From Macrostomum lignano (taxonomy: Eukaryota), in NCBI GenBank assembly GCA_002269645.1, contig NIVC01004966.1:1-29955 (forward strand): DNA of 29,955 bases, given 5' to 3'. Each line of letters begins with the position of its first letter. Within the stretch, counting starts at the first letter, position 1. Below are positions 920-23,641 of this stretch, piece after piece. A model generated the notes under the pieces. It had not been told where the DNA came from. It saw only the letters and a program-made list of their open reading frames with translations, and made no database searches. Made by a program: the position numbers and the translations under genes.

Positions 920-1038
920 GTGTCTATACATATACTATACTCTTTGGCCTGAGCGGTCTAATGGCACAGTCTACTCTATTTACTCCTATAAGTTTTCTCT
1001 CAGTCCTTGACCTTGGCATTCCCTAGCCTAGATCAAAG

Positions 1039-1498
1039 CCATAGTCCGGATCATGGCAGGCGTACGCCGGAGTGAAAATTCGTATCTTTTCAATTTTACG
1101 CCGACGTAAAGTTCAAAATTTTTTTATGCCAAGTCAAAAGTTGTTTATACACCAACTTTTTAAAGAATTTGTATTTTTTAAAACTTAAAAATAATTATTT
1201 ACTTGAAAACGGCTGATTTTTTCCAAAAACTAATATTCTTTGTTTTAATTTTGTTTTTCTCGTAAATTTCGTTAATATTTTCTGTTTTGTTAACCGTTTA
1301 TATTCAGAAGAGCTTTGGTTAATTGATATTTAACTACACGATTGCATCAGCCCTGAACTTTTCTATTTCTTGTATGCCAGTTGTTTACACTTCATGTTGA
1401 ACCTGAATATTCTATACGCCAAATGTACGCCAAGATTGTCAGCGAGTGCAAAATTACGCCGGAAAATTCCGGCGTAAAGGCCACCTTCCGGACTATGG
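1039..1498. mobile_element. Non-autonomous hAT-like MITE (element A, CCATAG-TIR family), 460 bp
   Basis: TIRs CCATAGTCCGGATCATGGC (1039) and reverse-complement CCATAGTCCGGAAGGTGGC (ending 1498), 16/19 identical; perfect 8-bp TSD GATCAAAG at 1031-1038 and 1499-1506; subterminal TACGCC motifs. Confidence 0.92.
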
Positions 1499-1873
1499 GA
1501 TCAAAGGTCATAGCCTTATGCATTTTCTTTGCCCTGAGGCCAAGATGGAATTCTTGCACAAAAGTTGTTATGCATTTGTACGTGCTTGTCAAATTTGTTT
1601 GCGCTTGCGCGCTGAAAAGGAGCCTACTTGGGCACTCTTAAAGAAGGTGTGTGCACGCTCCATTGTCCATAGTCAGGAAGGTGTCCAGTGTACGCCGGAA
1701 TGAAAATTAAGAAAAAATGTTGTTTACGCCAAAATTGAAAAGCCCTAAAAAAGCGCTTTTTGACGTATGCCAAAATTGAATAGCCCAAAAAAGCGTACGC
1801 CAAAATTGAGGACCCAAAAAAACGCTGCAATTTACAGATTTAAAATTTATGTATTAATTACCTATTAAAAAGT

Positions 1874-4800
1874 TCATTTGTTTTCAGACAACGATTCTGA
1901 CAGAGACTTATCGGCTCCGACGAACAGACACCGACTACCCTGTTCCCGGCGCCGATCAATCACTTTGCTAGATTCATACTTCTTGCGAGCGTGGGCTTTG
2001 GGGTCGAAGAAGAGTGGTCCACGGTGTTGCCGCAAGCTTCTTTGACTGTCGCCAGTGTAATAAAGTTTCGCAGCTCGTCCCAAGAGTCGCTCATTGGCAC
2101 TGGTACCCACTGGCAGCAGCATCCAGCGCAGCTTCATTCTTACCTCGAGCGTGTCGTTGAGCTGACCGCCGATTTTTTGCTGCGAGCGTATTGTCGCGTA
2201 GTAGGATTCGACAATCACTTCTAAAAAAACGAAAGTTTCCATAATTACAAAGTATTAAAATTCTGCATACCTAAAACTTTTCAGACTAGCTCATGCTCAC
2301 CTGTGCCGCCGCGGTGAAGAGCAAAGTCGAGCAACAGACATGTGGCTTGACCAGCGCGGGAATAAACCGAGGGTCCTTGTAAAAAGCCGCATATACTGCT
2401 GACTCGTTAAGCGTGGCGCAGACAGACTCGCCTGGCTCTGTAGTCAGTCGCAGTCGAAGCGCCAGATCGCCTGACTTGCGGGGTTCCGCAGAGACCTTAA
2501 TAATGCGACCCTGTACAGCAGGTGTGAGCCAGTTATCTCGGCCGTCGCCTGAGATGAATGCCTCGTGAATAGTCGTGATAAAAGCCTCCAAATACTTCCG
2601 TGATAGGGACGACTTCACGTGCGGTGCGAGACGCTCGTGCTTTTCAGCAAGGCGGACGAGGTGCTTCATCTCAACGGCATGAGTTGCATTCTCGACTGCC
2701 TCTTCGATGTCCTCGGCAGTCAACAGGCTAACGGCAGATGCTGCATCCAGGACAATTGACGGATCCCTGACGCAGCATTTCTCCAATCGCGCAAGAAAGG
2801 AGCGGTGCAGGCTTGAAGCCAACTGGACTAGGTCCTGGAGAGAATTATAAATATATATAAGTGCGTTAATACACTAATCATGACATGACAGAAGTTTATA
2901 CTTTTACACAGTAGCGGTGCTAAAACTCAGAGTTAAAAATTACCCGCTCCATATCCTGGGACTCTCGGAGTTGCCAGTCGACCCTGCTGCTTGGCCTACC
3001 GGTGCGTTGGTTGCCTCGAGCGGTCACCGTGGGCTTGTCCGGCAGTACAAGCCATCCGCCCATCAATTCGACCGATTTGAATGAGCCTCCCGGTTTGATG
3101 GACTCATAGAAGGGCTGTAAAAATTGAAGTGAAGTAGGAAAGAAATGAATGCGCAAATTTAAGCCCTTTAAATATAATTTAAGCCCTTACATATAGGCCC
3201 AAATCATTTACCTGCAGTCGTGGGTAATCCTCAACTCGGAAAACCTCTGAGTGATCAGCAAAATGCTTCGCTACCCGATCGGCCAGCACGGAAACCTTCC
3301 AGTGAGGCAACTGGAGGTTCTGAGCCACTTCCATCAGGGAGACTAGTGGACCAAAAAGGTCCTGCAGGCACAGCAAGTCAAAAACGAAGTCGCTTCCGAA
3401 CATTGCATATTGCGACTCTTCGTCATCAGAGCAGCACGGATTTTCTGCTCGAAATGCGGTGTGCAGAGCGGCGTAACTTGCCTCAATGGCGGACCACTGT
3501 CTAAAAAAAGAAGCGTAGTGGGAGGACATTAAATAAATTTTTATTTACGCTTTTCATCACCATTTTTATTAGACTATTTATTGATAAAAAATAGCTGGTA
3601 CTTACTTGATTGCAGAGCTCGTGAAACGCTGGGCTGCGAAATGCGACATCGCTCGAGCTGAACCGTCTGACGCCTCTTTCAGTGCTGCCTCACCACGACC
3701 ATGGCTGAAATAGGTAGCAAAAAAATTCGCTCGCTTTATAAACCGGCGCAATGACTCCCCATCAGGTCCATCGCGAACATCAGTGACGGCCAGATTCAAG
3801 TAGTGTGCCGCATCCCACATCACAGGAATCTTTTCGACGTCATCGACAGGGGCCCCGAGCTCGGTCCGAATAGCGCGGCAGAATGTGCCAGCTTGGTACT
3901 GGCCATCAGCGACGATACCCATGATGCTTGCAGTGGGCGTCTTCAACACCTGATAGATTCAAAATGATGAAATTAAGCACTCGTCTAATTTAAAGTTTAA
4001 AACTGTTAGAATCCCTTCAATCGTCCAAAAAATAATACGTTAGTGACGGTTACCTTAAGTGTCTGCATTAGTCTTTTGGCCAGGGCTTCCCCATCTGCTT
4101 GCATTGCAGAGTCGTACACAGCAGGTGCACCCGCAGGAATCGCTACGGCTTCGCCATTTTCGCAGCGAGCTAGAAGGAGTGCCGCCTGATTCGTTGTGCG
4201 GCCTGGGGTGCTTTTGTCGCAGGTGATGGTCAGCAGAGGCGGCTGTCCAGTCGAAGGCAGAGGACACCGCAGAAACTCTGCACTTTCGTCGTTTACGCAG
4301 GCGTCTAATAACTTCCAAAGTTCTTTGCAGAATGCACTTTGTAAGGAGGGAGGGTAGGTGAAATGACAAAGTTATTATTTATTAAGTATATCTGATTGCA
4401 TTTAAATAAAATTATTTATAGATATGTTTGCAGGTAAACTTACAAGCCATGGCCAATCTGACCAACTTCACAATCAGACGCATCGAGCAGACTCATTAGA
4501 GTCTCGTAATGCGAACCCGCAGCAGCCATTTCAATTGTCGCAATAGCACAGCGGAGAAGGGTGCGCACAACCTTGCCTTGTGCCGTCTGTTGTACGACTT
4601 CGGTTCGGTAGTCCTTCACAGCCGAATAGTGGGTCTTGCTTGTCGAACAGTGGTTTACGAGTTCATTGCGAAATTTGGAGAACTCGTCCACACCACTTAG
4701 CAAACCTGCGACTCGTTCGGCTGAAAGTCGTAGCCCTCTGCTGAAGGACTTATTCTTTTCAGTGGTGGTGGGGTTCCTGGAAAAGTGAAAAGCTCGGTAC

Positions 4801-6977
4801 ATTAACACCTTAAGTACTTCTTTAAGACTATCCCGTCTAAACGGACTCTACATACAGTACATTTAAAAAACATTCGACTTACAGAATGCTGTAGATTTGC
4901 TCGGCTGTACAGTTGGTAGGCATCAGTTTCGACTTGCAGAGGAACGTGACACAGGGAACGCAGTTAAAAATCGAGTCACCATTCTCGCACGACTTGAGCG
5001 AACAAAACTCAAACTGCAGTAACTCAGCGAAACTATTTGTGGCCGCCACATCATCGTTGCCGAGGTCGATTTTGGACTTATTTTCTTGATTGCTGCCCTT
5101 ACTACATTTAGATGTAGCAACAGCATTGACGGATATATTTTCAAGCAGTTTTTTCATCTGCACAATCTCCTGCGTCTGTGACTCGAACGCCTTTTGCAGA
5201 GCAGTGATCTTCTTAGCCATGTTTTCTGGAGCTGGTGCTGAATCAACAGCTTCGAGTCGCAACTGTAGACGACACTGCAGGTCTGTCTGCTGCTGCTGAC
5301 CGGATGACTGCTGCTGACCAGATGACTGCTGCTGACCGGATGACTGCTGCTGACCGGATGACTGCTGCTGATCGGATGACTGCTGCTGATCGGATGACTG
5401 CTGCTGATTGGATGACTGCTGCTGATCGGATGACTGCTGCTGATCGGATGACTGCTGCTGATCGGATGACTGCTGCTGATCGGATGACTGCTGCTGATCG
5501 GATGACTGCTGCTGATCGGATGACTGCTGCTGCTGCTGTTCAGACTGATCAACCTCAGCACTCAAGTCGTCCTCTTCGTCTTCCACAGTAGCTACATTTT
5601 GCAGGGCACGCTCATTCAACAGCCTTCGAACCTCCTGGTTATCTCTTCGAGCGAAATCAGGAGGTGCATGTCCAACACCTTTGCGCCCCTGGTGTTGACT
5701 CTTACAGTGCCGATTAAGATCATGTGGAAGACCACGGACTGTTCGGCAGTTTCGCAAATTTCGACCAGCCCTTAAGCAGGACAAACAGTAGTGCACATCC
5801 TGTGCAATTACTCTTTTGGGTTGCTTGGCTTCTAACTGACTTGGGCCAGAATTACTAACAGACTTTCGCTTGCGATTGTTAGAATTAGAAATAGGCTGCA
5901 GCTGATTTGGGGTTGCAAAAAATCCCCAGCCTTCTTTAAGACCTGTCTTAGGACCAGCTGCCTTTAATGAAGTAGAAGCAGCCGAAAAACCTGTTTTAGT
6001 GAAAGGGTTTTATTGGGGCTACTTAAGGGGTTTAAAATAATGTTGCTATAGAATAGATAGAAAGGGCGGGGATTAATATAATATGGTAATAATGAAAATG
6101 GTCTTGGTCTGATGACTCTGATTTTGAATGCTACATACATTCTACCTACAGGCACAGCCTACAGCTTTGGATTGCATTGCTACATATATACAAAACTAAT
6201 TAACTAACTGTATTGTCTAAGAAAAGTAAGTCAAAAATTTATAATAAGTTAACAATAAAATAAAGTTAAGTATGAGTATGGCAGTATCAGCTATCACCTA
6301 TCAATCACTATCAAATCAATGTATGAGTCAGAGTCAGATCTCATGTAAATAATAGAATGTGAAATTAAACAATATACATACTTTATACTTATTGATGTTT
6401 GACTACACTACACTAAAATAGAACATATACATATATTGGATTTGGATTGGATAAAAACTGGCCTACTTGTCGGAATCTGACAATCAATAACAATAACATG
6501 AATCATCATAAATGAATGACTAGACTTAAGACTTAATGACTAGACTTGTCAATGTTAACAAAAGTATAGGCAAGGCTGTAGCCTGTAGCCTGTACTGTAT
6601 GTATCATGTATGCTATGGGCATGGCTGCATTAGCTGATTAGCATAATATATTTAAAAGCAAAATTTGAGAATCAAGGCTATTCATATTGGTCCCTAGCTC
6701 AATGTTTAATATTCTGTCTAAAATTTATTTTCTTCAGAACTTATAATTTATAATAAAATATAAGAAAAGAATATTGAAAACAGGCAATTAGCAAACAGGC
6801 AGCCAGGCTCAACAGCAACAGGCCACACTTACTAGAATCAATAGCTGAGCTAAGTGAGCTTGAAGTTGAATCCAAAGCTTTATCAATAGCATTGACATTA
6901 TCAGAAGAAACTTCCATCTCCTCGACCTCGTCCTCAGTGTCAGTGTCAGTGACAGTGACAGTGTCACTAGTTTCCAT
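1874..6977 (-). CDS. hAT-like DDE transposase, predicted 9 exons, about 2 frame disruptions
   Basis: Exons predicted from GT-AG sites: 6977-6833 (start and this exon least certain), 5957-4883, 4808-4444, 4336-4054, 3949-3606, 3500-3212, 3114-2944, 2834-2301, 2220-1874. Phases agree except at the exon 2/3 junction and one 1-nt shift near 2355. Motifs: N-terminal C2H2/BED-like finger (CLSC...RHCKSQH), TITCDKST (D1), GIVADGQY (D2), WDAAHYLNLAVTD, QRF, VIVESYY (E). Confidence 0.8.
5293..5535 (-). repeat. 18-bp coding minisatellite encoding (QQQSS[D/N/G]) x13
   Basis: Unit GATGACTGCTGCTGATCG on the + strand; 13 units in frame within the large transposase exon. Confidence 0.95.
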
Positions 6978-7934
6978 TGGTGTTGCAACTTGCAATGGTA
7001 TGGTTAAAGTTTCTGAGCCGATGAGCCTGGCTATATCAACACGACAACACAGTCGAGTCAACACTGAATATTTATATTTCACTTCCTTCCTTGTGGATTC
7101 GATTGTGCTTACAAAGTTACACACAAGTTACACAATAACACAACACAAGTCAAGACAACAAGCGAAGCAATCAGTATATTAGTATATACAAATACAATAA
7201 TAATAGTTGCAAAAATCCAGGAGAGAGAACAGATCAATTTGAATGGTCTGAAGAACGAACTTGAAGAAGACGAACTCGACGACGAAATTGCTAACAAATG
7301 TAATAAAATAAAACTGCAAATTCGCGAAATTTGCAACTTAAATCTTAACTTACCTGTATGTCATCTGTTGTAACGTGAAGAAATCTAAAATACTAAAGTA
7401 ATTATTGTACAGAATTAGTTAATAAGTTAAAATAAATAACTGACTTACACAAAACTTTAGTAAAGTTTTGTTAACAATAAATTAGATTCAAAATTTACGT
7501 AATTTCAGCGTTTTAAAGATGAAAATAGATTTACCAATTCACTAAAATTGAACGATATACAATACTTTGTCGAAGTAATTGGGTTGTTTGCAGGTTTTTT
7601 AAACGTTTGTTCTTACGCCAATCACATGCAAATATTGTAGGCCGATTTTTGGACAGATTTTTGCATGCGAAAACTGTGTTGTGTACGCCAAGAACTCTGT
7701 ACGCCATTTTTCGGACCGCGTGTACGCGAAACTGTACGCCATTTTTTTTGGGGGGGGGGCTGATGTACGCCGGAAAATTCCGGCGTACGGACACCTTCCT
7801 GACTATGGTCCATCGTATGCGCTTGCAAAGAAGCTAGCTGTTTGCCACAAAATCACAGATAGGATTTGACTTTTATATGTATTCAACATGGTTATGTGCC
7901 ATGTAGTGTATACGTGCTCAAATTCTCTTATTTT

Positions 7935-8154
7935 TCATAGTCCAGAAGATGTTTTTACACCGGAAAATTTTAAACAAAAGTAAAACAAATAATAATAGTT
8001 TTTTAGCAAAAACAGTTACTTAAAAGTTTAGTAAAACTTTTGTTCAAGCTATTTTACACTTAAAGTACAACTTTCTAATTTATGTCGGCGTTAGAATTGA
8101 AAAACTAGAAATTTTAATTTTTAGTGCATGGGCCTGCCATGACCTGCATCATGA
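7935..8154. mobile_element. Degenerate ~220-bp MITE (element C), same subfamily as A, opposite orientation
   Basis: Left end TCATAGTCCAGAAGATG resembles the family TIR; right end CCTGCCATGACCTGCATCATGA is the reverse complement of A's left end; interior 8080-8105 matches A 1085-1110 in reverse. Candidate TSD CTTATTTT / CTTTTTTA (6/8). Confidence 0.65.
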
Positions 8155-8224
8155 CTTTTTTACAACTGGCATGCGCCATAGTCAGGAAGGTGGCCTTTGC
8201 CATGGAAAATTCTGGCATACACAA

Positions 8225-8345
8225 GGGGTCCTTGGCACACAATCATGGCGCACACTGAAGTCCCTGGCGCATGCAGCGCTCAATCATGGCACACACTGAG
8301 GTCCCTAGCGCATGCAGCGCATAATTGCGGCGCATAAGGTCCCTG
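8225..8345 (+). repeat. Subterminal ~41-bp direct repeats of element D
   Basis: CAATCATGGC(G/A)CACACTGA(A/G)GTCCCT(G/A)GCGCATGCAGCGC twice plus a partial copy. Confidence 0.8.
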
Positions 8346-8689
8346 ACATGCATGAAAATTGTAATGCAAATTAACAATTTTATGTAAAACACGCTGTTGA
8401 AACCCGCAGAATTTGAACCCAGGGAATTCCAATCTGAGAAATCTGAAATCTGAGCTGAAACTGAGCCCATACTGAAACAAAAACTTGTTAATAGTTAGTT
8501 AGTAAGATAGAGGTAAACAAAATGGAGTACATTCGCGTACATTTAGAATTTGAGGCAAACATTGATATTGTTGGCTGGGGTGCTTTTTACTTTAAATAGG
8601 CAATTAATGTCTGTCTGACTCTAAAACATGTATTGGCAAACTCTGGCCTCTGCTTCTGACTCTCCCTACATCCATTGGATCCTTTGAAA

Positions 8690-10543
8690 CTTCTATCTTC
8701 TCTTCTGTTTCCTCTCTTCTCTCTCGTCCCTCGTCTCTCCTCTCTGAGCTCTCTCTCCTCTCCTCTCTTCTCTTTTTTCCTCTCTCCTCTCTCCCCTCTT
8801 CTCTCGTATCTTCCCTCATTTCTCTTCTTTTTCATCTCTCTTATCTCATCTCTTTTCTCTTCTTTTCTCTTTCCTCTCCTCCCACTCTTCTCTTGTCTTT
8901 TTCTTCACCTCTCTTCTCTCTCGTCTTTATTTGCTCTCTGATCTCTCCTTTCTCTTCTCTTTTATCTCTTTTCATTTCTCTCTGCTTCCTCCCTCTCTCT
9001 CTGCTTCCCCCCTCTCTGCTTCCCCCCTCTCTGCTTCCCCCTCTCTCTCTGCTTCCCCCTCTCTGTCTGCTTCCCCCCTCTCTTTATCTCTCCTCTCTTA
9101 TCTTTCTTCTCCTCTCTACTCTCTCCCTTCCATTCTCTTTTCTCTCCTCTCGCCTCACTCACTTCTCTCTCCCTTTGTCTCTCCTCTCGTCTCTATAATC
9201 TCTTCTCTCTTATCTCTCCTCTGTTCTCTGTTCTCTCCCATCTCTCGTCTGTTCATTTTCGTCTCTGCTCTCAGCTCACCCCCCTCTTTCATCTGTCATC
9301 TTTACTGTCTTATATGTTCTCTCATTCTGTCCTATGTACTCTTTTCTTTCACCTCTTTTGTCTCCTCACTTTCCTTTCTTCTTTCTTATCTTCTCTTCTC
9401 TTCCCTCTTCTATATACTCTCTCCCTCTCTTGTCTCGTCTCTTCTCTCTCCACTTCCCTCCTTTATCTCTCATTTCTCCTCTTTACTAACTCCTCTCTGC
9501 TCTTCTCTCTGCTCTCCTCTCATCTGCAGCTCTCTACTCTCTCCTCTCTACTCGCTCCTCTACTCTCCTCTCTACTCGCTCCTCTCTACTCGCTCCTCTC
9601 TACTCGCTCCTCTCTACTCTCTCCTCTCTACTCGCTCCTCTACTCTCTCCTCTCCACTCGCTACTCTACTCTCTCCTCTCTACTCGCTCCTCTACTCTCT
9701 CCTCTCCACTCGCTACTCTACTCTCTACTCTTTCCTCTCTTCTCGCTCCTCTACTCTCTCCTCTCCACTCGCTACTCTACTCTCTACTCTCTCCTCTCTA
9801 CTCGCTCATCTACTCTCTCCTCTCCACTCGCTCCTCTACTCGCTGATCTACTCTCTCCTTTCTACTCGCTCCCCTCTTCATTCTCCTCTTTCCTCTTCTC
9901 TCTCCTCACTCACTTCTCTCTCCCTGTCTCTCCTCTCTCCTATCTCTTCTCTCTTATCTCTCCTCTGTTCTCTCTACTCTCCCATCTCTCGTCTGTTCAC
10001 CCTGATCTCTGCTCTCTCATCTGTCATCTTTACTCTCTTATACGTTCTCTCACTTATCTCCTCTGTACTCTTCTCTTTCACCTCTTCTGACTCCTCTCTT
10101 TCCTTTCTCCTTTCTCCTCTTCTATTCTCTTCTATACTCTCTCCCTCTCTTGTCTTCTCTCTTCTCTCTCCACTCTCTCCTCCTTTATCTCTCTTATCTC
10201 ACTTGTCATCTCTCCTTCGTCTGTTCACTCTCATCTTTGCTCTCTCATCCCCCTCGCTCTTCTGTCATCTTTACTCTCCTCTTTCCTGTGTACTCTTTTC
10301 TTTCCCCTCTTCTGACTCCTCTCTTTCCTTACTCCTCTCTTCTTTTCTCTTCCCTCTTCTATACTCTCTCTCTTCTCTATTATCTTCTCTCGTCTCTCTG
10401 CACTCTCCTCTCACCTTTTTAATCTCTCATCTTTACTCTCTCATCTCTCCTTTCATCTGTCTCATCTCTACAATCTTATCTCTTTCCTCTCTCCTCCTCT
10501 TCCCTTTACTCTATCATCTCTCCTTTCTTCTCTCTTCTTTCTC

Positions 10544-10622
<79 letters not shown>

Positions 10623-11070
10623 CTCTTATCTCTTTTCTCATCTTCTCACTCATCTCTCTCTCATCTCTTATCTCCTCTTCTCACTCCTCTCTCTCCCCCT
10701 CTCTCCCCCTCTTATCTCCTCTCTTCTCTATCATTTCAAATCTCTCCTCTCGATCCTCTCTCATCTACCTCTCTGTTCTCTCATCTCTTCTCACTCTTCT
10801 CTACTCTCCTCTCTCATCGATCCTCTGTCTCTTCTCTCCCCTCTTCTCTCTGCATCTTCTCACCTCTACTATTTCATCTCGCCTCTTCTCTCCATCTTCT
10901 CACCTCTACTATTTCCTCTCCCTCCTCTCTCCCCTCCTCTCGCTTCTTCGTCCCGTATTCTCTGCTCTCTCCTTAACCCCCTCGTACGTCTCTCCTGTTA
11001 TCATCTATCTTTTCTTTTACCCCCCTCTCGCCCCTCCTCCCTTTCTAATAGTCTATTCCTTTTCCTTTTT
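8690..11070 (+). repeat. ~2.4-kb CT-rich low-complexity array with internal duplications
   Basis: The + strand is almost all C/T. Sub-blocks: CTCTGCTTCCCCC(CT) units ~8985-9080; CTCTACTCGCTCCT-type units ~9530-9870; related blocks at ~9150-9380, ~9903-10110 and ~10215-10330; pure (CT)n ~10547-10620. Confidence 0.95.
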
Positions 11071-11699
11071 ACTCTGATCTGGGCTGCAGCCATGAGCTGG
11101 ATTCTTTATCTGCATGGCATTTGAGATAAAAATCTGTCGATCCCCGCTTCGAAAGCCAGTTTGTGGGACGTAGTACTATAGTACTATATAATGTTAAAAT
11201 TTTCATGGTGTAACTAATTTAGTAGGATTGCATTGTAATTAGTTTATTCATTAATTTTTCGCTATTTTTACAAACCATCCCACATAGCCTTGATTTGCCA
11301 TCCTTGTTTAACTGCTGCGACTTGTCTATACAGAGGACAGTAGTTTGAATCTCTCGCTAAACTCTCTCCTTCCCACACGCCTCTCCACTCGCGGGGGTAC
11401 AGAGAAGGCTATTAAAAAGTTATTCCAAAACACTGTACACTCGCTATGTACATTGAGCCCTATCGCCTGACCCTTCGTCTGAGCTGGGGAAATGAGTGAA
11501 AGAGCGGCACAAACAACAGAAAAAGCAGACAAACTTCACATGCTTACAGTTTGCGTCCTGTTTGAGATACAGAGTTGAGACTTTGCATTTAGACAGAATG
11601 AATCAAAGAAGAATTGTGTTAAGTTAGAAATCAATCGCTTCACGTGGAGCAAACTTATAGCAGCTGAAAGTTAGTCAATTTTAAAACCCTTTTACACAT

Positions 11700-12084
11700 C
11701 TGGGCCCAGATCGGGAAAGAGAGGCAGGCGGGCGGAGGTTGGGGTGGCTGTCTCGCTGAAAAAACAGCCTAACTTTAAAAGTGCACAACACCGCTCAGGA
11801 TTAACTTTTAGACTCGAAATTTTACATGATTGTGCCAAAATAGTTTAAGATTATCTGTGTCAAATTTGAAGAGAATTGGTAGAAGTGGAGCGGCGCCATG
11901 GAGGATTAAGTGAAAAAATTGCGCATTTTGAGCAGTTTTTTGTACTTTTAGGCAGGAAGACTTGAGTCTAGGAAATTTAAAGGTAGCCTAAGACATTCTC
12001 GGTAGTAAGTTTAGGGTGGGTGTAAAGTTTGGTGTAATTTGGTTGAGTGGTTTGGGAGTCCATAGCGATCAAATTTGTACACAG

Positions 12085-12117
<33 letters not shown>

Positions 12118-12140
12118 GAGTTTTGATTTATATGTAGAGA
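11700..12140 (-). mobile_element. Non-autonomous Helitron-like fragment (5' end) with (CA)n microsatellite
   Basis: The + strand ends ...ACACAGAC(AC)nAGACAGAGTTTTGATTTATATGTAGAGA|T, i.e. A|TC on the minus strand, the layout of Lep1-type non-autonomous Helitrons. No CTAG 3' end found; left boundary approximate. Confidence 0.5.
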
Positions 12141-12359
12141 TAAAGGAGATTTGTATAGTCTAGAAAGTCAGTGGTAAACTTTTTGCTTCTTTAAAATTAA
12201 TAGTAAATAAAATTAGTATAAATTATCGCTAAGGATGTCAATTTTGCATTACTCCAATTGTAGGTATAGTTTAAGTTTGTTTAAAATGAAATTATTGTGT
12301 AAAATTTTAAAAAGGCTTTTCGTATGAAGGCCTTTCTTAGAAAACTCTACTCGTGAAGA

Positions 12360-12410
12360 GTGGCGCACAGACAGCGCACAAATGGCGCATAGACAGCGCA
12401 CAAATCGTCC
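12360..12410 (+). repeat. 22-bp subterminal direct repeat of element D
   Basis: TGGCGCA(C/T)AGACAGCGCACAAA twice. Confidence 0.8.
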
Positions 12411-12527
12411 CAAAAATTATTCCGGCGCACACTGTGCCACCTTCCTGATTATGGGGCGTGCGCACTTGCGCGCTGCTCCAAAAATATGCGCGCGCATTTT
12501 CCTACCCCGAGCAAGAATTCCATCCTG

Positions 12528-12612
12528 AGCTGAGGTGCTTTTCCTTCCCTGAGGCACTTTTCCTGCCCTGAGGCGATCTTACAACTCTATAGTGCTTTCT
12601 TTCCCTGAGGCA
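12528..12612 (+). repeat. Short degenerate ~20-bp tandem repeat flanking element E
   Basis: GC(A)CTTTTCCT(G/T)CCCTGAGG-like units; a matching unit lies left of E at 1520-1540. Confidence 0.6.
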
Positions 12613-13771
12613 ATTCTCGCTCTTAGCAGTTTCTGATACTCCCAATGAGGGGCTTAATACTCTAGAAAATGAGTAAGGCTTTTTGAATACTGCAATCTAG
12701 CAAATATATTCAGAGCAAGTTATTTAGCTTGCAGAACTGTAATACGAAGGAAACAAGTTAACACAATTTATTTTTCTTGGCCTCTTCTAGGCTCCTATTT
12801 ATACTTAAGTCTAAGATTTATTATTTTTTCAAACAAAAAATATTTGTGACAAATATTTTTATAACTCACAACATTTAAACAAAAGATAAATTATTTGTTT
12901 TTTAGTGTGTATTTTAAATAGAGTTTTCTAAGAAGCATAAAAATAAGTAAACTATTAGAACTATTATATAGTATTATACTATTATTAATGCACTCTCACT
13001 ATCAATGTCATAAATGTTATAACAATGCTAATTGCTCTTACTAATAAATGTCCTACAACTGTCACCAAGTTGTGCTAGGGTAATACCTAGCATAGGTTCT
13101 CCTATGGATAGTTAATGTACTTTTGTATGTACTTTTACTTTTTCTACTGGTATCATATCAGTTTCTAACAGTTTCTAATAGTAGTATGGCACGAGATGTT
13201 TGCAAAGAGGACAAGGGCATGATACTACCATAGGCCACAAGATTGGTCGCCGCTGTAATATAGCTTACCAGCTCGATCAAGTACTCGTAGCTGCTTATAT
13301 GGATTAGTCCCGATAGGTGGCACCATCCATTGTAACTTTGCGCATTTGCAGCGTCTCGTTATTCTGACAGCTAGGCATCTGCTGGGAGCACATTGTCACT
13401 TAAAATGACTTAATAATTGCCTGTGAAAAAATGAATTATGCATACAATTTTTACATAACTGAAACCAATATTAACAATACAACTAATGGTTTGAAATAAG
13501 CCATATAGGTACACTGTATCATCTGTGCCGCACCCGCCACGATGCAAAGTGTAGTCCAACAACAAGCATGCTGCCTTTCCAGCATGCTCAAATACCTGTG
13601 GCTTGCTGTAAAACAAGGCGTATACAGCTTTTTCGTTCAACTGACTCCTGAACGACTTTCCTAACTTTAGCATTATGAGAAGCCAAAGGTCCAAGTCTCT
13701 GGGTTTTGGGTCTTCACATTGGACTTTTTTGACTTGGCCTTGGACATCAGGCTCTAACCAACCGTCGCGCC

Positions 13772-14028
13772 TGTTGTGCATGGACTTTTGGTTTAGCAAA
13801 CGCACTAATGCTTCCCTTCTTTTGTCTATAGTCTAGGGTACAATCTTTTATTTCTTTAAGAGCCGAAGGTTAACAGTATAACAAAGGGCAAGCAAGACGT
13901 GCGCCGGCTAGAGGCAAATAAAGCTTGTGAACAGCTCGTATTTTAAATAATGCTTCGACTTGACTTTGATGTCAGATGGTAGCCTGGAGGCAATAGGCGG
14001 TATAGAAGCAGAAGAAAAGGACATAACA
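13772..14028 (+). repeat. 5' LTR (257 bp)
   Basis: TGTTGTG...ACATAACA, direct repeat of 15984-16242. Confidence 0.95.
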
Positions 14029-14913
14029 ATGGCGACGAGTGTAAAAATCGGAGAGTTCGACGTGGCTAAACCGGAGCAATGGGAAGCTTATAAAGAACAA
14101 CTCGAGCAGTTTCTCGTCGTAAACAAAGTGACCGAGGAGGCACATAAGTCAGAAAATATGATTACAGTGATTAGTAATGACTGCTATCAATTGCTCCGCA
14201 ACCTGCTGTCACCAAAGAAGCCCAAGGATGTGAACTTCGACGATCAAGTCAAGGCCCTGGGGGAGCATTTTAACCCAAGGCCTAAGATCGTTGTCGAGAG
14301 ATTCAACTTCCATAGCAGAGCCCAACATGAAGGAGAAAATGTGAGCAATTTCATCGCAAGTCTGCGGAAGTTGGCTGCCACGTGTGGTTTTAATGAATTC
14401 TTGGACGAGGCACTGAGAGACAGGTTCGTTGTCGGCCTAAGGAATCGCCTGACACAGCAGCGTCTGTTGCAAGAAGACACACTGACACTAACTGGAGCAC
14501 TTACTCTTGCGACTGCGATAAAAGCAGCGTAAAGAGGTGTGGTGACAATTTTGTCAACCGGTGCAATCCAGGCGGTGAAGTCTTCAAGAGCCAGTAAAAA
14601 TCTGACAGACGGCTTGTCAGAGAAGAACAACAGAAATAATCAATCTGGATGCTTCCGCTGCAATGCACAAGATCACTGGGCAAAGAACTGCCCCTACCGT
14701 AGCAAGACGTGCAGCAAGTGCGGTCGAGTGGGACATAAAAGTGATGCCTGCCGCACAAAGGACAGGACTAAAGATTCCGGAGGTGGAAAGCAAAAGAAAC
14801 TCAGCTCGTCCAGACATAAGAGACACGGCAGAGTGCACTATGCACTAGTTCAACCAGCTCAGACAGCAGGGACTCAAACTGTACGAGTCAGGGACACCAC
14901 AGGGGTGCTTTGA
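14029..14913 (+). pseudogene. gag: Gag with two CCHC zinc knuckles, premature stop at 14530-14532
   Basis: MATSVKIGEFD...WEAYKEQLEQFL...VVERFNFHSRAQHEGENVSNFIASLRKLAATCGF...LRDRFVVGL; same frame continues past the stop to CFRCNAQDHWAKNC and CSKCGRVGHKSDAC. Confidence 0.92.
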
Positions 14914-14920
14914 AGTCACA

Positions 14921-15965
14921 GTGTGCTCGACTGGACAGGTCGCGCATGTCACTTCTCCACCATACGAGTGCGAACTGGAACTGAACGGAAAAGCTGTAAG
15001 ATTTCAAGTGGATACTGGTGTGGATAAAACCCTGATCAACGAGAAGACCAGCAAGCAACTTGGCCTGAAGCTTTCAAGGACTACCATAAGGTTGTCCAGC
15101 TACACGGATCACTCAATCCCAGTATTAGGTGATGCAACAATTGACGTGGTTAGCCACAACGTCAGGCTTTACCAATTGCCTGTACTGATGGCAAAGGAGA
15201 ACGAGTAAATCAGCTTGAACGCGACTGGCTTTCTAAGATCAAGATTGACTGGGACAAGTTTGCGAGTGTGAACGTGACCACATTAGTCCAGCCTATAGAT
15301 CTATTGGTAAGGAGGCATGAGCAAGTGTTTGCTGAGACATTGGGAACCATTGAAGGATTGAAGGCCAATATAGTGCTGAAGGAGAATTCAATACCAAAGT
15401 ATTTCAAAAGTCGGCCAGTTCCATTTGCAATCAAAGGTCTCATTGAGGACGAGCTCAAGAGTTTGCAAGCCCAAGGAATCATCACGAAGGTGAAGCATCG
15501 GATTTCGCATCGCCAATCGTTCCTGTTCTCAAGCGCGATGGAAAATCAGTGAGGCATGAGTTCCAGGAGGGAGAAAAACTTCTGACGCTTGATTTCAGAA
15601 GGGAGAAAGAGAACAGATGGATTCCTGCCGAGGTGGTCACCCGCACAGGACCAATGTCTTACAGACTGCAGGTCAACGGGCAAATCTGGAAGAGGCACGT
15701 TGATCAAATTGTCAAGACAGACGTTCTTCCCACCCGAATTCCACCAATCATGAAGAGGCATCAGGACGATCAGACTGACTTGGCTCGTGAGCAAATGCAG
15801 AGTGAGGACATCTCAAATCCAGCAGCCCAAAGCGTGCCCGTGCAGGACGAACCACAGACAACCGACTCAGACGGAACTCGTGGCAAGAGCACTGACACAT
15901 CGGCTAAAGAACCTAGACGACTAAGGGACAGAGACAAATTGCAGAAACCGGACCGGTTGAGATAA
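14921..15965 (+). pseudogene. pol: Pol remnant: aspartic protease, RT N-terminus, integrase C-terminus
   Basis: FQVDTGVDKTLI (protease); VFAETLGTI...RPVPFAIK..IEDELKSL..QGII...ASPIVPVLKRDGKSVR (RT start) fused to HEFQEGEK...WIPAEVVTRTGPMSYRLQVNGQIWKRHVDQI (integrase C-terminus). Confidence 0.9.
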
Positions 15966-15983
15966 TAATTAACAAAGGGGGAA

Positions 15984-16242
15984 TGTTGTGTATGGACTTT
16001 TAATTTAGCAAATGCAATAATGCTTCCCTTCTTTTGTCTATAGTCTAGAGTACAATCTTTTATTTCTTTAAGAGCCGAATGCTAACAGTATTACAAAGGG
16101 CAAGCAAGACGTGCGCCGGCTAGAGGCAAATAAAGCTTGTGAACAGCTCGTATTTTAAATAATGCTTCTTCGACTTGACTTTGATGTCAGATGGTAGCCT
16201 GGAGGCAATAGTCGGTATAGAAGAAGAAGAAAGGACATAACA
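15984..16242 (+). repeat. 3' LTR (259 bp)
   Basis: Direct repeat of the 5' LTR, preceded by purine tract AACAAAGGGGGAA. Confidence 0.95.
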
Positions 16243-18169
16243 GCGGCCTTCACTAGGCATGAAGGAGTGGTGAATCGTCATTATAAATGACTCTGTGTAC
16301 TTTCGAGCCAGCGTCTCTCAAAGTATAGATTTCTTGCGCTGTGAAGCTAGACGTACGAGCTGCTGCATCTCAGGAGCGTTAATCTTGCCTTCCACCACTT
16401 CATCTAAATTTTCAGTGGCCAGAAGGCAGATGGCATTAGCCACATCCATGGCAAAAGACGGATCCCGCTTTAGACATTTTTCCATATGTGCCAAAAATGA
16501 GCAGTGGAGTGCTGCGGCCAAATTTATGATGTCTCATAAAGGCAGCAGAAGAAGCAGTATTTTGATTTAAAATAACAAACCATGCACACTCGACTTTTGC
16601 CACAGTTACAAATGATTCTACTATTTGCCTGTTCGACATCTTGGGGATCACAGAGACGCCAAGTAAAATTGCTGCCAAGTAAAGTCCGTGGGGTGTTTCT
16701 AGTGCACACCTGTGGTATTTGGCTGGACAATCCAGCCCTCAAGCAGCTTCATGGACTTATAGGACCCTCCAGGTAGGATTGACTGATGGCATGCCTGAGT
16801 TGCAATGAAGTGCGAAGGACACAATAATGATCAAGCTCTCATAAAACTATTCCATTTAAATTGTAATACAGTATATGAATTTTACCTGAAGTCGCAGATA
16901 GTCTTCAACACGGAAGGTTGTAGACCAATCGAGTAGAAACTTCGCGACTTGGTCGACCAGCAGGGACACCTTCCAGTGCGACATCTGAAGGTCCTGTGCG
17001 ATTTCCATTAGTGATACGATCGGCTTAAACAGGTCTTGCAGACAACAAGTCGAACACAAAATTGCTGCTGAACATCGCATACTGAAGTTTCTCATCATCA
17101 GAGCATCTGAGATTCTCTGTGCGAAACGCTTTGTGAAGCTTGTAATAGGACTCGTCCACTATCTGTGAAGGAGAATTGCATGTATACTTAAAATATGTTC
17201 GTCATGATGTAGTGCCTGTATGCGGCAATTATTTAAAAAATTGCACACTTTTTATATCTTTTGTTACTATCAACAAATTAATGAATCAATATACTAACTT
17301 CACTGCAGAGCTCGTGAATCGCTGGCTCGCGAAATGGGACATCGCTCGAGCTTTTCCATCATCAGATGCAGCTTCTAATGCGCCGTTACCGCGACCATAG
17401 CCAAATAAGCTTGCAAAATAGTTTGCATAGCTTCAATGCAGACTCGAACTGCCGACCTTCTGCTTAGCCTATGCTTGTTATTGCCTGTCTACAGCAATTC
17501 AGTAATTCTTGAAATTAGCTATTCCTTCTAATCCCGCAAAACAGACAGTCATACTAATAACAGCCTGCAGTTATCCACTTTGCCGTCTACAACTTTCATT
17601 AACATCTGCAAAATACAATAATTCATTCAGCAGTCTGCAGTTATTATCCACTAAAACTCTGTAAATAGTTATCCCATCGGAAGTTTGCAGCTATACACTC
17701 ATAAGTCTTGAGGAACAACCTCAGCAGTTTTTCGTTTTTCAACTTGGCAGTCTAAATGAATGATCCCTTCGACAATCTGCAGTTCTCCTCAGCAACCTGC
17801 TGAGGAGAAACAACAATTCTCATTCTCAGCAGTCTGCAGTTTTCCTCTTTGCTGGCCCCTCAGTATCCTCAGGAAGCTGCAATGATCCTTTCAATAATTG
17901 TACGGCTCATTATATAATCAATTTTCGATAGATATTGGCAGTCTTTTGCACATCAATGCAACGAAGATTTTGCATCGTCTGCAATTTAGCGATTAGTCCA
18001 GGCAGGCACAAGCTACAAATAAATGAAAATTAATTTATTATACGCGTATTTTATCTCCCACGTGCATAAACTGAAGCTTGCAAATATTTAATTATTTATA
18101 GCTCGTAGCATCAGCTCAAGAAGTTAAAGTTTAGTCTATGGCCATAAACGTATTATTATTTTTTGAGCT

Positions 18170-18383
18170 CTCTGCGAGAAAAATGCACTAATTAGATAGG
18201 GAAAATACAGTTTTTTCAATATTTAAGACCTTTAGAATTGAAGCAGATAAAAGAAATGTTAACCATACAATCCTTGGTTGAGTTGCAACTTTTTGGTGAA
18301 AACGCGTTCGAAATTGGTCAAGAATTGCAGTCTGTAGAGCGTTTTACACGGACAGACATAGATTAGAGATTTAGTATATAAAA
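18170..18383 (-). mobile_element. 5'-end fragment of a related Helitron abutting the 3' end of the large Helitron
   Basis: Shares TGCGAGAAAAAT(G/A)CACTAATTAGATAGG...AAATACAGT and GATTTAGTATATAA with 24068-24282; the middle is diverged. Confidence 0.6.
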
Positions 18384-19074
18384 CTAGAGAATTTGCCCCC
18401 CCTTCGGGGGGAGACTGTACAGTTCTCTTTGGATTAGACGCAATCTTCCATTGGATTTTTAAGGCCTAAATTAACAATCAAATAAAACCGACGTCCATTT
18501 TGTACTCAAAAGTATGCTGATATACAGAACAAGTAAGAAAAGCATCCGACCATGGACATGTTGAAGTTATTGCGGGCAAACTTATCACTTTTTATTTCAG
18601 AGACTCGCTTTTAATTATTACTTTTAGCATGTGGCATAAGGTTACAATTGTATTTTTGCGGGTGAATTTAGTTAGTTAGTATAGTTTAGTTAGTTGGGTT
18701 AGTTTAGTTTTATTCGATTAAAAATTCTGGAACAAATTTAAGTAGTAGTTAATTTGCTTGAAAGTTTGAGAACAAAAGTTTGATCTAGCAAATTGAAATT
18801 TTCAGCAGCATTGAATCTTAACGTAATCGACAACGATTAACTTAAACAGCAACCTAAAATTACTTGCAGCATATCCTAAATAATTATTTAACCATAAAAT
18901 ATCCTCGGTTACTTGGGGTTGTAGCAGATTCCCGTATTTTTCAGGGAGTTTCCCGTAAGCTTTCCATCTTTCATAGGAATTCGTTACAAATGTTCAACAG
19001 GCCAACGTACTAAAATGGAAAGTGTATTAATGTGTTCTTCAAGTACAAACTATTAAAAAGTCAAATCATACCCG

Positions 19075-20141
19075 TTAATATACATATGTATATATAAGTA
19101 CCCGTTGCGCTCCACAGCGGATAACAACTCGACGCATCCGGTCGATATGCGGCTGCATCGACGCTGGGAATTCAAATGCAAGCACGTCGTCAGCTGCGGT
19201 GTCAGTAATGTCCATAGTTGAGCTATTAGCTAGCGGTAGAAATTGGGTGCTGCTCTCGGACTCTTCGTACCAGGTTTTCAGATCTTGAGCAGTGTCGTGA
19301 ACAGGCGAATACGAAATAGTTGATGATGAGCAACCAAGACAAAGCGAGCCGGCGTACTCTTGAATCTTGGCTTTTCTAATGGCGACTACGTCTCCTGGTC
19401 TCCACAAATGTACCTGGGTAGCAGAGGCGTCCCAGAAGTTGCAAAAAGTCTGAAAACCAGATTTGTCTACGATGCAGACTTTTGCGAGCTGCACCAACTT
19501 TCCGGAACGCGTGTTGACGTCAACGGGTTGTTCTACTTTGACAATGACACCGAGAACATCAACAAAACTGAAAATATAAAGAATGAAAATGTGTGAAGTA
19601 TATATATCTTCCTGTTTATTCTACATTTTGAGGATGGACTTACCCATTCACTCCAATTCTTGGTAGTTCGGAGAGCGCTTTGAACGGACCATTTATGGGA
19701 ACTATCGCATCGCTACACTGGCGGAGAGAGTCCTTGTTATCCTCATTGATTGACAGAGTAACTTCATGCATATTGCTTGTTCGGTTGAATTTTGGATTAG
19801 CACACTTTACCATTCCTTCACGGATGGAGATTGTTTGCCCGTTTTCGCAAATGCTCCAGTGTTCTTGCAACTCATCGCCAAAAACTGCCACTCTGATTTC
19901 ACCTGACTCATCTGACATCAAAAACGAAAACCATTTGTTCTTCTTGCCATCCCTAATCTGGTTTAGTAAAAAACGATGTTGTTTAAGTGGATTGATTTTA
20001 TAAAAAAAGTATATATATGAAGCAAAATAGCAAATTATGGAAGCTTACCTCAGTTCTTAACGAAGTAATTCCGGAGACTACGCCGCGCATGGGACCGACA
20101 GAAAGAGAAGAAATCGTTAACTTGCTTAGCTTGCTTGCCAT
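19075..20141 (-). CDS. Helitron-borne RPA70 (RPA1)-like ssDNA-binding protein, two OB folds, spliced
   Basis: Phase-consistent exons 20141-20049, 19957-19644, 19567-~19102 (possible small exon from 19009 to a stop near 18971). FSFLMSDESGEIRVAVF..., CANPKFN, FVDVLGVIVKVEQPV, CNFWD, GDVVAIRKAKIQEYAGSL, AQDLKTWY resemble RPA70 DBD-A and DBD-B. Confidence 0.85.
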
Positions 20142-20393
20142 CTTTTAACATAACGATGAAGACAAATTTAATGGAATTTACTACTTGCAGCTATAAATTC
20201 ATCTTAAGCTAGAAATGCATCTCAAGCTTATGCATTCCGCGAAAAATACAGTTTCAGGACACACATTTTCTCATAGACGTTTTGCGTGACAGCATGCACT
20301 TTCAATATTTAATCGTGGCTCGTAGTAAAATAGCAACATATTTTTTTACATTGAATTGTAAAAAATTATTAATAGATAATAAAGACGTCCAAT

Positions 20394-23300
20394 TCAAAAA
20401 ACTTCTGGGTAAACGATATTTTTGGTTCTTTCGCCGCACATTCGAACTCGAACATTACAAACATTTTTTGCTCTGGAAAGTGCAGTGTAGAGCTGTCCAT
20501 GCGCAAAACAGCTACCTGCAAGGTCAATTCCAACTACGTCAAGGGATTGGCCTTGTGCTTTATGAATAGTCATGCAGAAACAGGGTCGTAGAGGAAATTG
20601 TAGCCTTCTGAACTTAACAGGTAGATCCAAATTACTTGGTATCAATGGTACGCGCGGCAACAAAACTGTTTCGCCTTTGAATTGACCAGCAGCAATTTGA
20701 CATTGTAAGATATTGTTTCGCAATTCCTTAATGATTAATCGTGTTCCGTTGCACAGTCGTGGTGGGTTTAAGTTTCGTAGTAGAACTACAGGCATCCCGC
20801 ATTTGAGACAAAGCCGATGCTTTGGCAATCCAGGTGCGTCCATACTATTCAGCACTTCAGGTGGATAGTGCGTCAAGTCATCCTCATCCTCGACACTGTC
20901 AATTGATCTATATTCGCGATCAACGCCTGGAAATAAATCTAAACATGCATCGTTAATTTTATCAACGGAGTCGTTTAGTGGAGCTAAAATGACGCGGCTC
21001 TCAAACAACTTCTCCCTGTTTTCGATCCCAGCGAACGTTGGGTATACAAACCGGATCAAATCAACATCAGTAGCGTCACCAGGCAAAACGATTTCGGGTG
21101 GTAGCACGATATTGGCGTCTGAATCACTCGGTATCGAACCTTCGCCAACCTAAAATGGTTAGAAACAAAATAGAGTAAAGTATGAGACCCACTGTCACAT
21201 CCTGCTTTCAATAATTCGAAAGTAACTTACCCGAAGTAGAAACTCAGCTTACCAGTTTGCCGATTGATCGACAGAGCCACTGTTAAAAAGTCGAATGTTT
21301 CGTGTCAAGTGATGTCTTTGAAACTTTAACCACAGAGCTGATCGACTTACACAGGCGATTACATTGTTTGCGCGTGTTCCATGTTTTACGACCGGCAGCA
21401 GCTGCCGAAAGTCGCCACAACAAACAACTGTTATTCCGCCAAACGGAGCTTCATTATCTCTAATGTCTCTTAAACTTCGATCAACCGCTTCCAGATCTTT
21501 TCTGTTAACCATCGATATCTCATCCCACACAATAAGCTCGGTTTTTCTGAAGATGGACGCCAGTTTGGATTGAGCACCAACGGAACATACTTCCCTTTCG
21601 AATCTCATAGTCCTTACCGGAATCTTGAACACCGAATGTGCAGTTTGACCCCCAGGAAGCAGGGTGGCCGCAATTCCGGAGGACGCTACAGCAAGAGCCA
21701 TCTGCCCTCGGCTGCGGACAAACGAAAGGATAACTTCCAGCAAGTAGGTTTTGCCTGTTCCAGCCGGCGCATCGACAAATTGCAAGTCACCAGTTTTGTT
21801 CGAAATGTTAGTAATAACTTGATCGTATATGCTTCTCTGTTCGTCAGTAAGCAAAGGCAATCGTTCAGTTAAGATGTCAGACTGTTCCATCGGATCGAAC
21901 TGGATTGGCCCAGCCTTGGGTATTTCGCTTGCTGCTGGTAGACCATAGTCTGGTAGATTGCGACCTCCCATGAACTTAATCATCGACTGAAGCTCTCGAA
22001 GAACCAAGTCGTCACCTCGTCATCATTTAAACCCGAGTTTCGATAGCGCCAATCTTCACTCATGAACTCGGAGAAATCCCGCCACAGTTCAGTAGCATCA
22101 ACTGGTTCGCCCCAACTAAGATGACCGCGAATAAATGACGCAGGGCCTTGGGCATTCGTGTCGGAGCGGCCTCATTCAAACTGAGTCTCCAGTGATAGTC
22201 GTGCTCCAATAGCTGCCGAGCAACGCATGCAGACCTATACGTCGTGTGTTCGACTTCGTCCACAGTGCGCAAATGTTTGTAGCATGTGGGTCCTCTAACG
22301 TGCAGCAGCAACAGCCGGAGGTAAAACAAATCGCCCGTTCTTGGACTCACTGTGTACATGCGGGCAATGTTAGTAGTGCGTTTTACACCACGAAAGCCAC
22401 TAACTGAAGTTCCTTGCTGAGCACGACGCCATTCCTTTGCTTCCTTGTGCCATACATAGTAAGATGGTGCTTCGATATAAAGCAACCGTTTAGCAAACTC
22501 GTCGACGCAACAGAGTTTGAAAATGCTGTAAGCATTGAGTCACTTGGTGTGCGTGCTTTGGCGCGTGCATTTTCTTCATTGAAGTAAACCGGCTGCTGAC
22601 CTGGTAAATGAACGCAAAGTCTGATTACTGCTGGAAAGCGGTTGTGGATTTGGAAGCCTAAGATTGTATTTACTGCTTCCATTGGGCCTATGTATCTGGA
22701 CGATAAATACTCGGCGATTTCGTTGACCACGGTTGGTTCTGCCGGATGCTCCTGTGGCTGCTCCTGTTGTTCTTGTTGCTGTGGCATTCGCTGTTCTGAT
22801 TGCTGTTCTCGTTGCTGCTGCTGTTGTTCTTGTTGATGCTGTTGTGGCTTGGGTTGCTCTTGTGGATCTTGCTTTTCATCGATTCTGGAAACTTTAAATG
22901 TTGCCATGTCACCACTCTTTAGCAAATATTTAATTATATATTTGACGGCCTTGACGGTCGCACATACTTCAACATTTAAGTGACATGCGAATTCTCTCAA
23001 TAGATCAGATTATAAGGCACAACCCATCGATTGTCCATTTCAACCTGACGACCGCTGCATTGCTTTGTGACAGTGAAGCCTCCCATCACAGGGGACCGTC
23101 TCCGGTAAAAAGGATAGCCGGAATCATTCACGAGCGTCTCAGGTAAAAAGTCTTTTGGAAAATTCTTCGAACAACTATTTTTTCCATGCAAGAACACCTA
23201 GGGTTGAGAGCTCCGCAAGGACCATGGATCATGTGTGTTCGAACCAGCTGATAAAGAACAGGCTGCTTGCTAGGGTCCGGGATCTCTGTTGAGACGAACT

Positions 23301-23641
23301 GATCATATTTGTCTGGTGTAACTCGATACTGAGGTGCCAACCAAAGAAGAATGTGCACGTGTGGAAGGCCACGCTTCTGGTACTCCAATGCGCAGACATG
23401 CGCTTGAACTTCGCCGAAATTAGTTTTTAGCCGTTTGAGTAATTGAGCGAACACGCGCGGCATCTAACCTGTCAGACCGTGCACTTATGGATTCGTTCTG
23501 TATACGCTTCCGACTATACTCTAGTTGTTTCTCAAGCCGCGAATTACGCTCCTCCGCTGTTTCCTGCCGACGACGCAATTTTGCTTCCCGACTCTTTACT
23601 AACTCACTCTTTCGCTTCCTCTTCGGCATGAGCGACAGCAC
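20394..23641 (-). pseudogene. Helitron RepHel (HUH endonuclease + PIF1-family helicase), frameshifted and internally deleted
   Basis: EYQKRGLPHVHILLW (HUH), GYPFYRRR, DNRWVVPYN, KYIIKY (catalytic Tyr motif), FYLRLLL, DAPAGTGKT, ASSGIAA, IVWDEISM, GDFRQLLPV, TIHKAQGQSL, HGQLYTALSR. One 81-nt intron at 21150-21230; at least 5 frame breaks. Confidence 0.93.

Follow-up and report, generated by a model that had tools for sequence, protein, structure and literature searches.

Transposons of the hAT superfamily such as Hermes, hobo, Ac and Tol2 are marked by an 8-bp target duplication, a short inverted repeat, subterminal repeat arrays and a palindromic repeat pair near one end; their transposase has an N-terminal CxxC..H..H finger and an RNase-H-like core into which a large helical domain is inserted, and derivatives resembling miniature inverted-repeat transposable elements (MITEs) accompany them. 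The same features, in the case of the protein fold as predicted by a structural model, characterize a family described here from a 29,955-nucleotide stretch of Macrostomum lignano DNA (contig NIVC01004966.1, positions 1 to 29,955; hereafter, the window), in which four copies, A to D, lie side by side between positions 1031 and 12535. The family departs from the described hAT systems in several respects: its ends start with CCATAG, not with the usual YAG/CAG-type hAT tip, its target duplications, as far as five sites show, fit the nTnnnnAn pattern poorly, its transposase gene has at least eight exons, and searches with Pfam models or of PDB sequences miss it.

Drosophila P elements have fine-scale hot spots and insert locally beside a resident copy, and their repeated independent insertions within a few hundred base pairs, like those described here, have been ascribed to open chromatin or to tethering by the resident element. 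P elements, however, belong to a different superfamily, and their hot spots consist mostly of polymorphic alleles or experimental insertions, not of four fixed copies on one haplotype. In rice, more than 10% of MITEs occur in multimers that arose by independent insertion, according to the passage of PMC5172404 that cites Jiang and Wessler (2001). Elements A to D resemble the MITE multimers of rice and maize in that they are adjoining, independent insertions of related elements, each with its own target duplication. In rice, however, the preference is put down largely to TA or TAA targets inside MITEs, often with true nesting, whereas A to D stand side by side in flanking DNA and show no visible target consensus. 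Adjacent or nested non-autonomous multimers and hAT insertion biases are both well documented, and in a transposon-rich flatworm-like genome the nest is a fairly ordinary, expected structure, built in this case by a divergent hAT lineage.

Six copies of the octamer CCATAGTC are present in the window, where 0.54 are expected, and the 17-mer CCATAGTCMGGAAGGTG, with up to three mismatches, has seven matches against 0.04 expected, all of which fall at element ends. A profile hidden Markov model (HMM) built from 11 ends (the eight in the window and three others from M. lignano) found exactly the eight window ends and nothing else below E = 0.05. These ends have the terminal inverted repeat CCATAGTC[A/C]GGAAGGTG in common and pair into four elements, each with its own 8-bp target duplication, as follows.

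CCATAGTCNGGAAGGTG: end signature of the hAT family copies
1039-1498, minus strand: element A, 460 bp, non-autonomous (MITE-like), with TACGCC subterminal repeats
1031-1038 and 1499-1506: target duplication of A, GATCAAAG, 8/8 positions matching
1667-7808, minus strand: element B, 6142 bp, a near-complete copy; inverted repeat 20/20; GTACGCC subterminal repeats
1659-1666 and 7809-7816: target duplication of B, TCCATTGT and TCCATCGT, 7/8
7935-8154, plus strand: element C, 220 bp, a degenerate, old, internally deleted and CpG-depleted copy of the A-type MITE
7927-7934 and 8155-8162: target duplication of C, CTTATTTT and CTTTTTTA, 6/8
8176-12454, plus strand: element D, 4279 bp, non-autonomous, of a second subfamily; inverted repeat 18/19; GGCGCAC/GTGCGCC subterminal repeats
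8168-8175 and 12455-12462: target duplication of D, GGCATGCG and GGCGTGCG, 7/8

The orientations (A and B minus, C and D plus) were assigned from the end that bears the palindromic repeat pair, which lies 20-45 bp from the tip at one end of each element (ACGCCGGAATTTTCCGGCGT in B); C is thus opposite to A.

A to D arose by successive, independent cut-and-paste integrations, at least four in number, of a single divergent hAT family. Because each element has its own target duplication, and because the elements differ in length and interior and are of mixed orientation, they did not arise by tandem duplication, as a preliminary description of this DNA had already argued. The coordinates and common inverted repeat given in that description were borne out, as were its gaps of about 168, 126 and 21 bp between A and B, B and C, and C and D, which we found at the same values, and its estimate of about 370 bp of ancestral DNA, since the region from 1031 to 12535 comes to 372 bp once the elements and the four duplicated target copies are subtracted. 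Its statement that every element has its own 8-bp duplication also stands, but not that the duplication of C alone is imperfect, given that those of B and D match at 7/8 positions.

Flatworm genomes rich in repeats are difficult to assemble (PMC5730564), and one could envision that the cluster is an artefact of assembly, or that a segmental or tandem duplication gave rise to copies that later diverged. However, no evidence for either was found, and the lengths of 460, 6142, 220 and 4279 bp, the interiors, the orientations and the subterminal repeat types all differ, the target duplications are separate, and self-BLAST showed that the elements have only their ends in common. Tandem duplication is therefore excluded and misassembly unlikely, and we regard this explanation as a whole as extremely improbable. 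Composite (macro)transposition of the whole block was considered separately and is ruled out, the outer flanks GATCAAAG and GGCGTGCG being unlike.

The transposase of the family is encoded by B.

1877-6009, minus strand: transposase gene of B, at least eight exons
6009-4882, 4847-4443, 4371-4009 and 3958-3605, minus strand: first four exons of B (approximate)
3544-3182, 3120-2947, 2873-2302 and 2254-1877, minus strand: exons of B, continued (approximate)

The protein carries a CxxC..HxxxxH finger and the motifs DKSTP, ADGQYQA, WDAAHYLNLAVTDVRD and IVESYY..GGQ; its reading frame is broken by a single frameshift near 2375-2390, immediately 5' of the exon with the catalytic-glutamate motif. Its relatives are 41-50% identical, the best of them in M. 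lignano; the collections searched contained no near-identical copy of the B exons. The family alignment displays the motif series DKSTP, ADGQYQA, WDxAHxLNLAVTDVRD and EAIVESxYS..GGQ. The family comprises 2375 protein clusters at 50% identity (E up to 1e-3) and is present in several invertebrates. The first coding exon of B also contains, at 5290-5532, an 18-bp tandem repeat (13.5 copies, 97% matches) translated as (SSDQQQ)n, which separates the N-terminal zinc finger from the remainder of the transposase.

The evidence on the fold comes from an AlphaFold2 model of a full-length homologue (P0005; predicted local distance difference test score, pLDDT, 71.5), to which B is 31-35% identical. When this model was compared with the PDB by Foldseek, the top three matches were all Hermes transposase (6dwz, 2bw3 and 8edg), with probability 1.00, E values of 1.6e-4 to 3.1e-4 and target template-modelling scores (TM-scores) of 0.49-0.57 over about 620 columns. 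In the model, the conserved D of DKSTP, the D of ADGQYQ, the WDxAH motif and the E of EAIVESxYS are located at the elements expected for an RNase-H fold. By homology to the modelled protein, B itself would have a Hermes-type fold. No hAT model of Pfam (Dimer_Tnp_hAT PF05699, DUF4371 or zf-BED) matched the exons of B or 19 relatives, and a search of PDB sequences with the family profile gave no match; in UniProt, one relative bears the name 'DUF4371 domain-containing', given by its source. We treat the missing Pfam match as a limit of HMM sensitivity and not as a defining failure of hAT membership.

Assignment to the hAT superfamily, which the preliminary description had also made, is by predicted fold and element anatomy and not by sequence models: the 8-bp duplications (A 8/8, B 7/8, D 7/8 and C 6/8, and 8/8 at the M. 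lignano locus described below), the short inverted repeats of 17-20 bp, the subterminal arrays and the Hermes-like fold of the modelled homologue all point to it. None of the target sites GATCAAAG, TCCATCGT, CTTATTTT, GGCGTGCG and GACATCAA, which are only five, fits nTnnnnAn at both positions. The N-terminal fingers of the relatives are occasionally recognized by Pfam, two members of the wider protein family having a Znf_SCAND3 finger (PF23663) and two a sub-threshold Spin-doc zinc finger, and in this they resemble ZBED9/SCAND3-type proteins. The latter are domesticated host genes, whereas the window copies, because they have inverted repeats and target duplications, are transposons.

The elements fall into two subfamilies with an identical inverted repeat (17 bp) and a subterminal repeat that is one base apart, (G)TACGCC in A, B and C versus GTGCGCC/GGCGCAC in D and in a 6018-bp element on M. 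lignano contig NIVC01001309 (locus L001). The latter has the identical 17-bp inverted repeat, a perfect 8-bp duplication (GACATCAA) and GGCGCAC(A) arrays, and the ends of D are 75-91% identical to those of this autonomous element. The ends compared were those at 1667-1830, 7600-7808, 8176-8340 and 12340-12454 of the window and at 9421-9620 of L001. The density of TACGCC is 15/kb in the outermost 300 bp of A and B as opposed to 0.2/kb elsewhere, and that of GCGCAC is 8/kb in the ends of D. Judging from the repeats, the one-base difference may mark a switch in the specificity of the DNA-binding finger. The left inverted repeat of A has a 7-bp insertion (GGATCATGG), and the same insertion is found in an A-type MITE end at 6798-6839 of L001, 2.6 kb from the full element. 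Between the window elements and this locus, conservation at the DNA level is limited to the ends. A profile search for further M. lignano loci led to a different clade, whose ends are of another kind, in marine-invertebrate assemblies (one hit belongs to an octocoral). When metagenomes were scanned with the inverted repeat (17 nt), there were, among the matches listed (at least 119 contigs), single chance matches only, and the 119 loci retrieved from among them had neither paired ends nor subterminal repeats.

The interior of D is without a transposase. Half of this element is a 2.2-kb CT-rich tract (8690-10860), strongly strand-asymmetric with a GC skew of about -0.8, which is composed of degenerate 7-, 12-, 14- and 26-bp units.

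The copies are of different apparent age, as had been noticed earlier, and C is indeed decayed, with a CpG density of 13.6/kb compared with 45.7/kb in A and a C-A column identity of about 66%. On the state of its sequence C is the oldest element, because it is an inverted, internally deleted and CpG-depleted copy of the A-type MITE; B and D are of intermediate age, and A is probably the youngest, given its perfect duplication. The mismatches inside the target duplications of B and D are CpG-to-TpG/CpA transitions, one in each. Such transitions, together with the CpG depletion of C, would be consistent with the deamination of methylated cytosines.

In collapsed coordinates, the four target sites lie within a stretch of only 299 bp. 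Four uniformly placed sites would be this close together with a probability of 1.6e-5 if the target is the 18.8-kb collapsed window, and of 2.8e-4 under a stricter null in which only the approximately 7.2 kb of non-transposon DNA serves as target. If earlier elements may serve as targets too, the three later insertions would all enter the 372-bp stretch with a probability of 3.6e-6; no copy was inserted inside B or D, which jointly offer 10.4 kb of target. Clustering is non-random at the scale of the window. The earlier suggestion that four such insertions point to targeting is upheld as far as non-randomness within the window is concerned (1.6e-5 to 2.8e-4), but not in the form of tethering that it took, which is weighed below.

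One could argue that no targeting took place, and that a transposon-tolerant graveyard has simply retained its insertions, the tight spacing having arisen by chance, perhaps aided by linked (local) transposition. Transposons account for at least 75% of the window (a Merlin-type element, A to D, an element E with a long terminal repeat (LTR) element inside it, a Helitron, and further transposase-like open reading frames (ORFs)), MITE multimers formed by independent insertion are common elsewhere, as in the more than 10% of rice MITEs mentioned above, and there is a look-elsewhere effect, in that the striking features were selected first. On the other hand, the probabilities of 1.6e-5 to 2.8e-4 hold even given four insertions in the window, and the large inserted elements were never used as targets. 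Local hopping has a range of roughly 100 kb to Mb and moves a single element (PMC2753552), not four different ones, and for this reason it is probably not the main cause; neither donor sites nor excision footprints were identified. We consider retention and chance an improbable explanation of the nest and rank it third.

The spot also contains an element of an unrelated superfamily, and a further copy of the hAT-like transposase lies nearby.

359-930: IS1595/ISXO2-like (Merlin-type) deletion derivative, 572 bp, with 51-nt inverted arms that are 88% complementary
13231-13769 and 16168-17426, minus strand: element E, a decayed transposase remnant of a third lineage, 47% identical in amino acids to B

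The residual C-terminus of the Merlin-type transposase, HTNTVEGTWAHAKRK, matches DDE_Tnp_IS1595 with E 1.2e-4, under the gathering score. The element lies about 100 bp left of the insertion site of A, so that five cut-and-paste insertions from two unrelated superfamilies occupy about 420 bp. Our preferred explanation, to which we give a rough probability of 0.42 and which is accordingly tentative, is that a narrow integration hot spot of about 0.3-0.4 kb, independent of the recognition motifs of the family, caused the clustering. The hot spot would be GCGC-rich, presumably accessible DNA inside a transposon-tolerant region; it would be entered repeatedly since hAT-type transpososomes favor nucleosome-free or accessible DNA, and its flanks would have remained available throughout, with the 10.4 kb of inserted DNA in B and D left unused. 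We rank this explanation first because the Merlin-type element is at the same spot, because the context is transposon-rich, and because Hermes is biased to nucleosome-free regions, as stated in the part of PMC7534453 that cites Gangadharan (2010). We also count in its favor that the subterminal repeat type of D differs from that of its nearest neighbor, C, and that the ancestral DNA is rich in GCGC and devoid of TACGCC (see below).

Several observations weigh against a hot spot of this kind. The accessibility of the site is purely inferred, and the cross-family support consists of one element of one other superfamily. No target duplication fits the classical hAT pattern nTnnnnAn well. Moreover, four of the five insertions in the approximately 420 bp belong to one family, of which E, 0.8 kb off, is a fifth copy, as would be expected of family-specific homing, and a single palindromic GTGCGCAC in the ancestral DNA, exactly at the insertion site of D, includes the 6-mer core of the D subterminal repeat.

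The last two observations favor a different hypothesis, a variant of the tethering put forward in the preliminary description, namely that transposase multimers with BED fingers, docked on the subterminal repeats of a copy already resident, retain an incoming transpososome nearby, so that integration occurs tens to hundreds of base pairs outside the resident ends, with C as the first resident copy and then B, and with E close by. Hermes forms octamers that have BED domains to spare, and its left end has a quasi-palindromic repeat pair (PMC10368747); the palindromic repeat pair of the present elements is likewise at their 5' ends. Each new site is 13-160 bp away from the end of a neighboring copy and none is inside one, and the TACGCC repeat type is common to A, B and C. 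D, however, has the other repeat type and yet is only 13-21 bp from C, the unrelated Merlin-type element is at the same spot, and at the M. lignano locus, a single one, the full element is 2.6 kb from the next family end. Tethering to a resident copy, with C first, fits A and B and fits D poorly. We rank this hypothesis second, and hold it to be unlikely. In a self-seeding nest, multimers on resident subterminal repeats would catch transpososomes of the same family, sister subfamilies with the same terminal repeat included, and steer them into the few hundred base pairs next to the resident ends, a mechanism that we find doubtful.

The ancestral target DNA also bears on homing, and it consists of the following segments.

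1499-1666: ancestral DNA between A and B, 168 bp with the duplication copies counted in; contains TTTGCGCTTGCGCGCTG
7809-7934: ancestral segment between B and C, 126 bp
8155-8175: ancestral segment between C and D, 21 bp
12455-12535: ancestral segment right of D, GCGC-rich (GGCGTGCGCACTTGCGCGC...ATGCGCGCGCAT)

The preliminary description had proposed that GCGC-rich subterminal motifs present at the site beforehand tethered the transposase. GCGC is indeed frequent in the ancestral DNA, with 10 occurrences in 396 bp (25/kb) compared with 1.7/kb in the remaining window, but this DNA contains neither TACGCC, the repeat of A, B and C, nor the GGCGCAC heptamer of D. The possibility that it is itself a decayed family member or an end of E was rejected, as it gave no significant local alignment to the element ends (z up to 2.2), and the end profile detected no relic ends in it. 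These absences also count against homing, and tethering to motifs already at the site appears weakly supported at best. The ancestral DNA shows no host-element structure beyond a weak 25-nt inverted match (12505-12529 versus 1532-1557), which scores 30 where the null maximum is 28. An RNA gene as insertion target was also tried and rejected, with no tRNA gene and no Rfam match found.

Element E starts 777 bp right of D, where the preliminary description had correctly noted a diverged transposase copy at a distance of about 700 bp. It is truncated on both sides and has no recognizable ends; its left end would be expected near 12.8-12.9 kb, and nothing is seen there. Inside E is an LTR retroelement.

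13772-16242: LTR retroelement inside E, with LTRs at 13772-14028 and 15984-16242 that are 94% identical

It has TG..CA termini, the flanks GCGCC and GCGGC, and a PNMA-like gag ORF, with no pol detected. Farther right, a Helitron remnant at approximately 19000-23500 on the minus strand encodes, in several frames, Helitron_like_N/Rep, a PIF1 helicase, a Pif1 2B domain and an ORF with an RPA-like oligonucleotide/oligosaccharide-binding (OB) fold, and is flanked by a 57-nt repeat (18172-18228 and 24068-24124, 82% identical). The best matches of its Pif1 ORF in the collection searched are 45-71% identical, none of them near-identical. Three overlapping ORFs of 182, 155 and 228 amino acids at 26719-28279 on the minus strand have Cys/His motifs and no Pfam match, and from these motifs they look like fragments of another transposase.

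There are two by-products of this analysis. One is a large hAT-like lineage undetected by current Pfam models, for which a dedicated model would improve the annotation of invertebrate transposons; the other is a pair of co-resident subfamilies that have the same terminal repeat and a subterminal repeat one base apart. If the clustering proved to be general for the family, it would be a natural example of a cut-and-paste transposon that limits damage to its host through small landing zones, and it would offer a handle on hAT target choice, that is, on accessibility versus tethering by BED fingers and subterminal repeats. Should the nest be self-seeding, it would represent homing at the level of a hAT family, with copies concentrated in nests and the rest of the genome spared.

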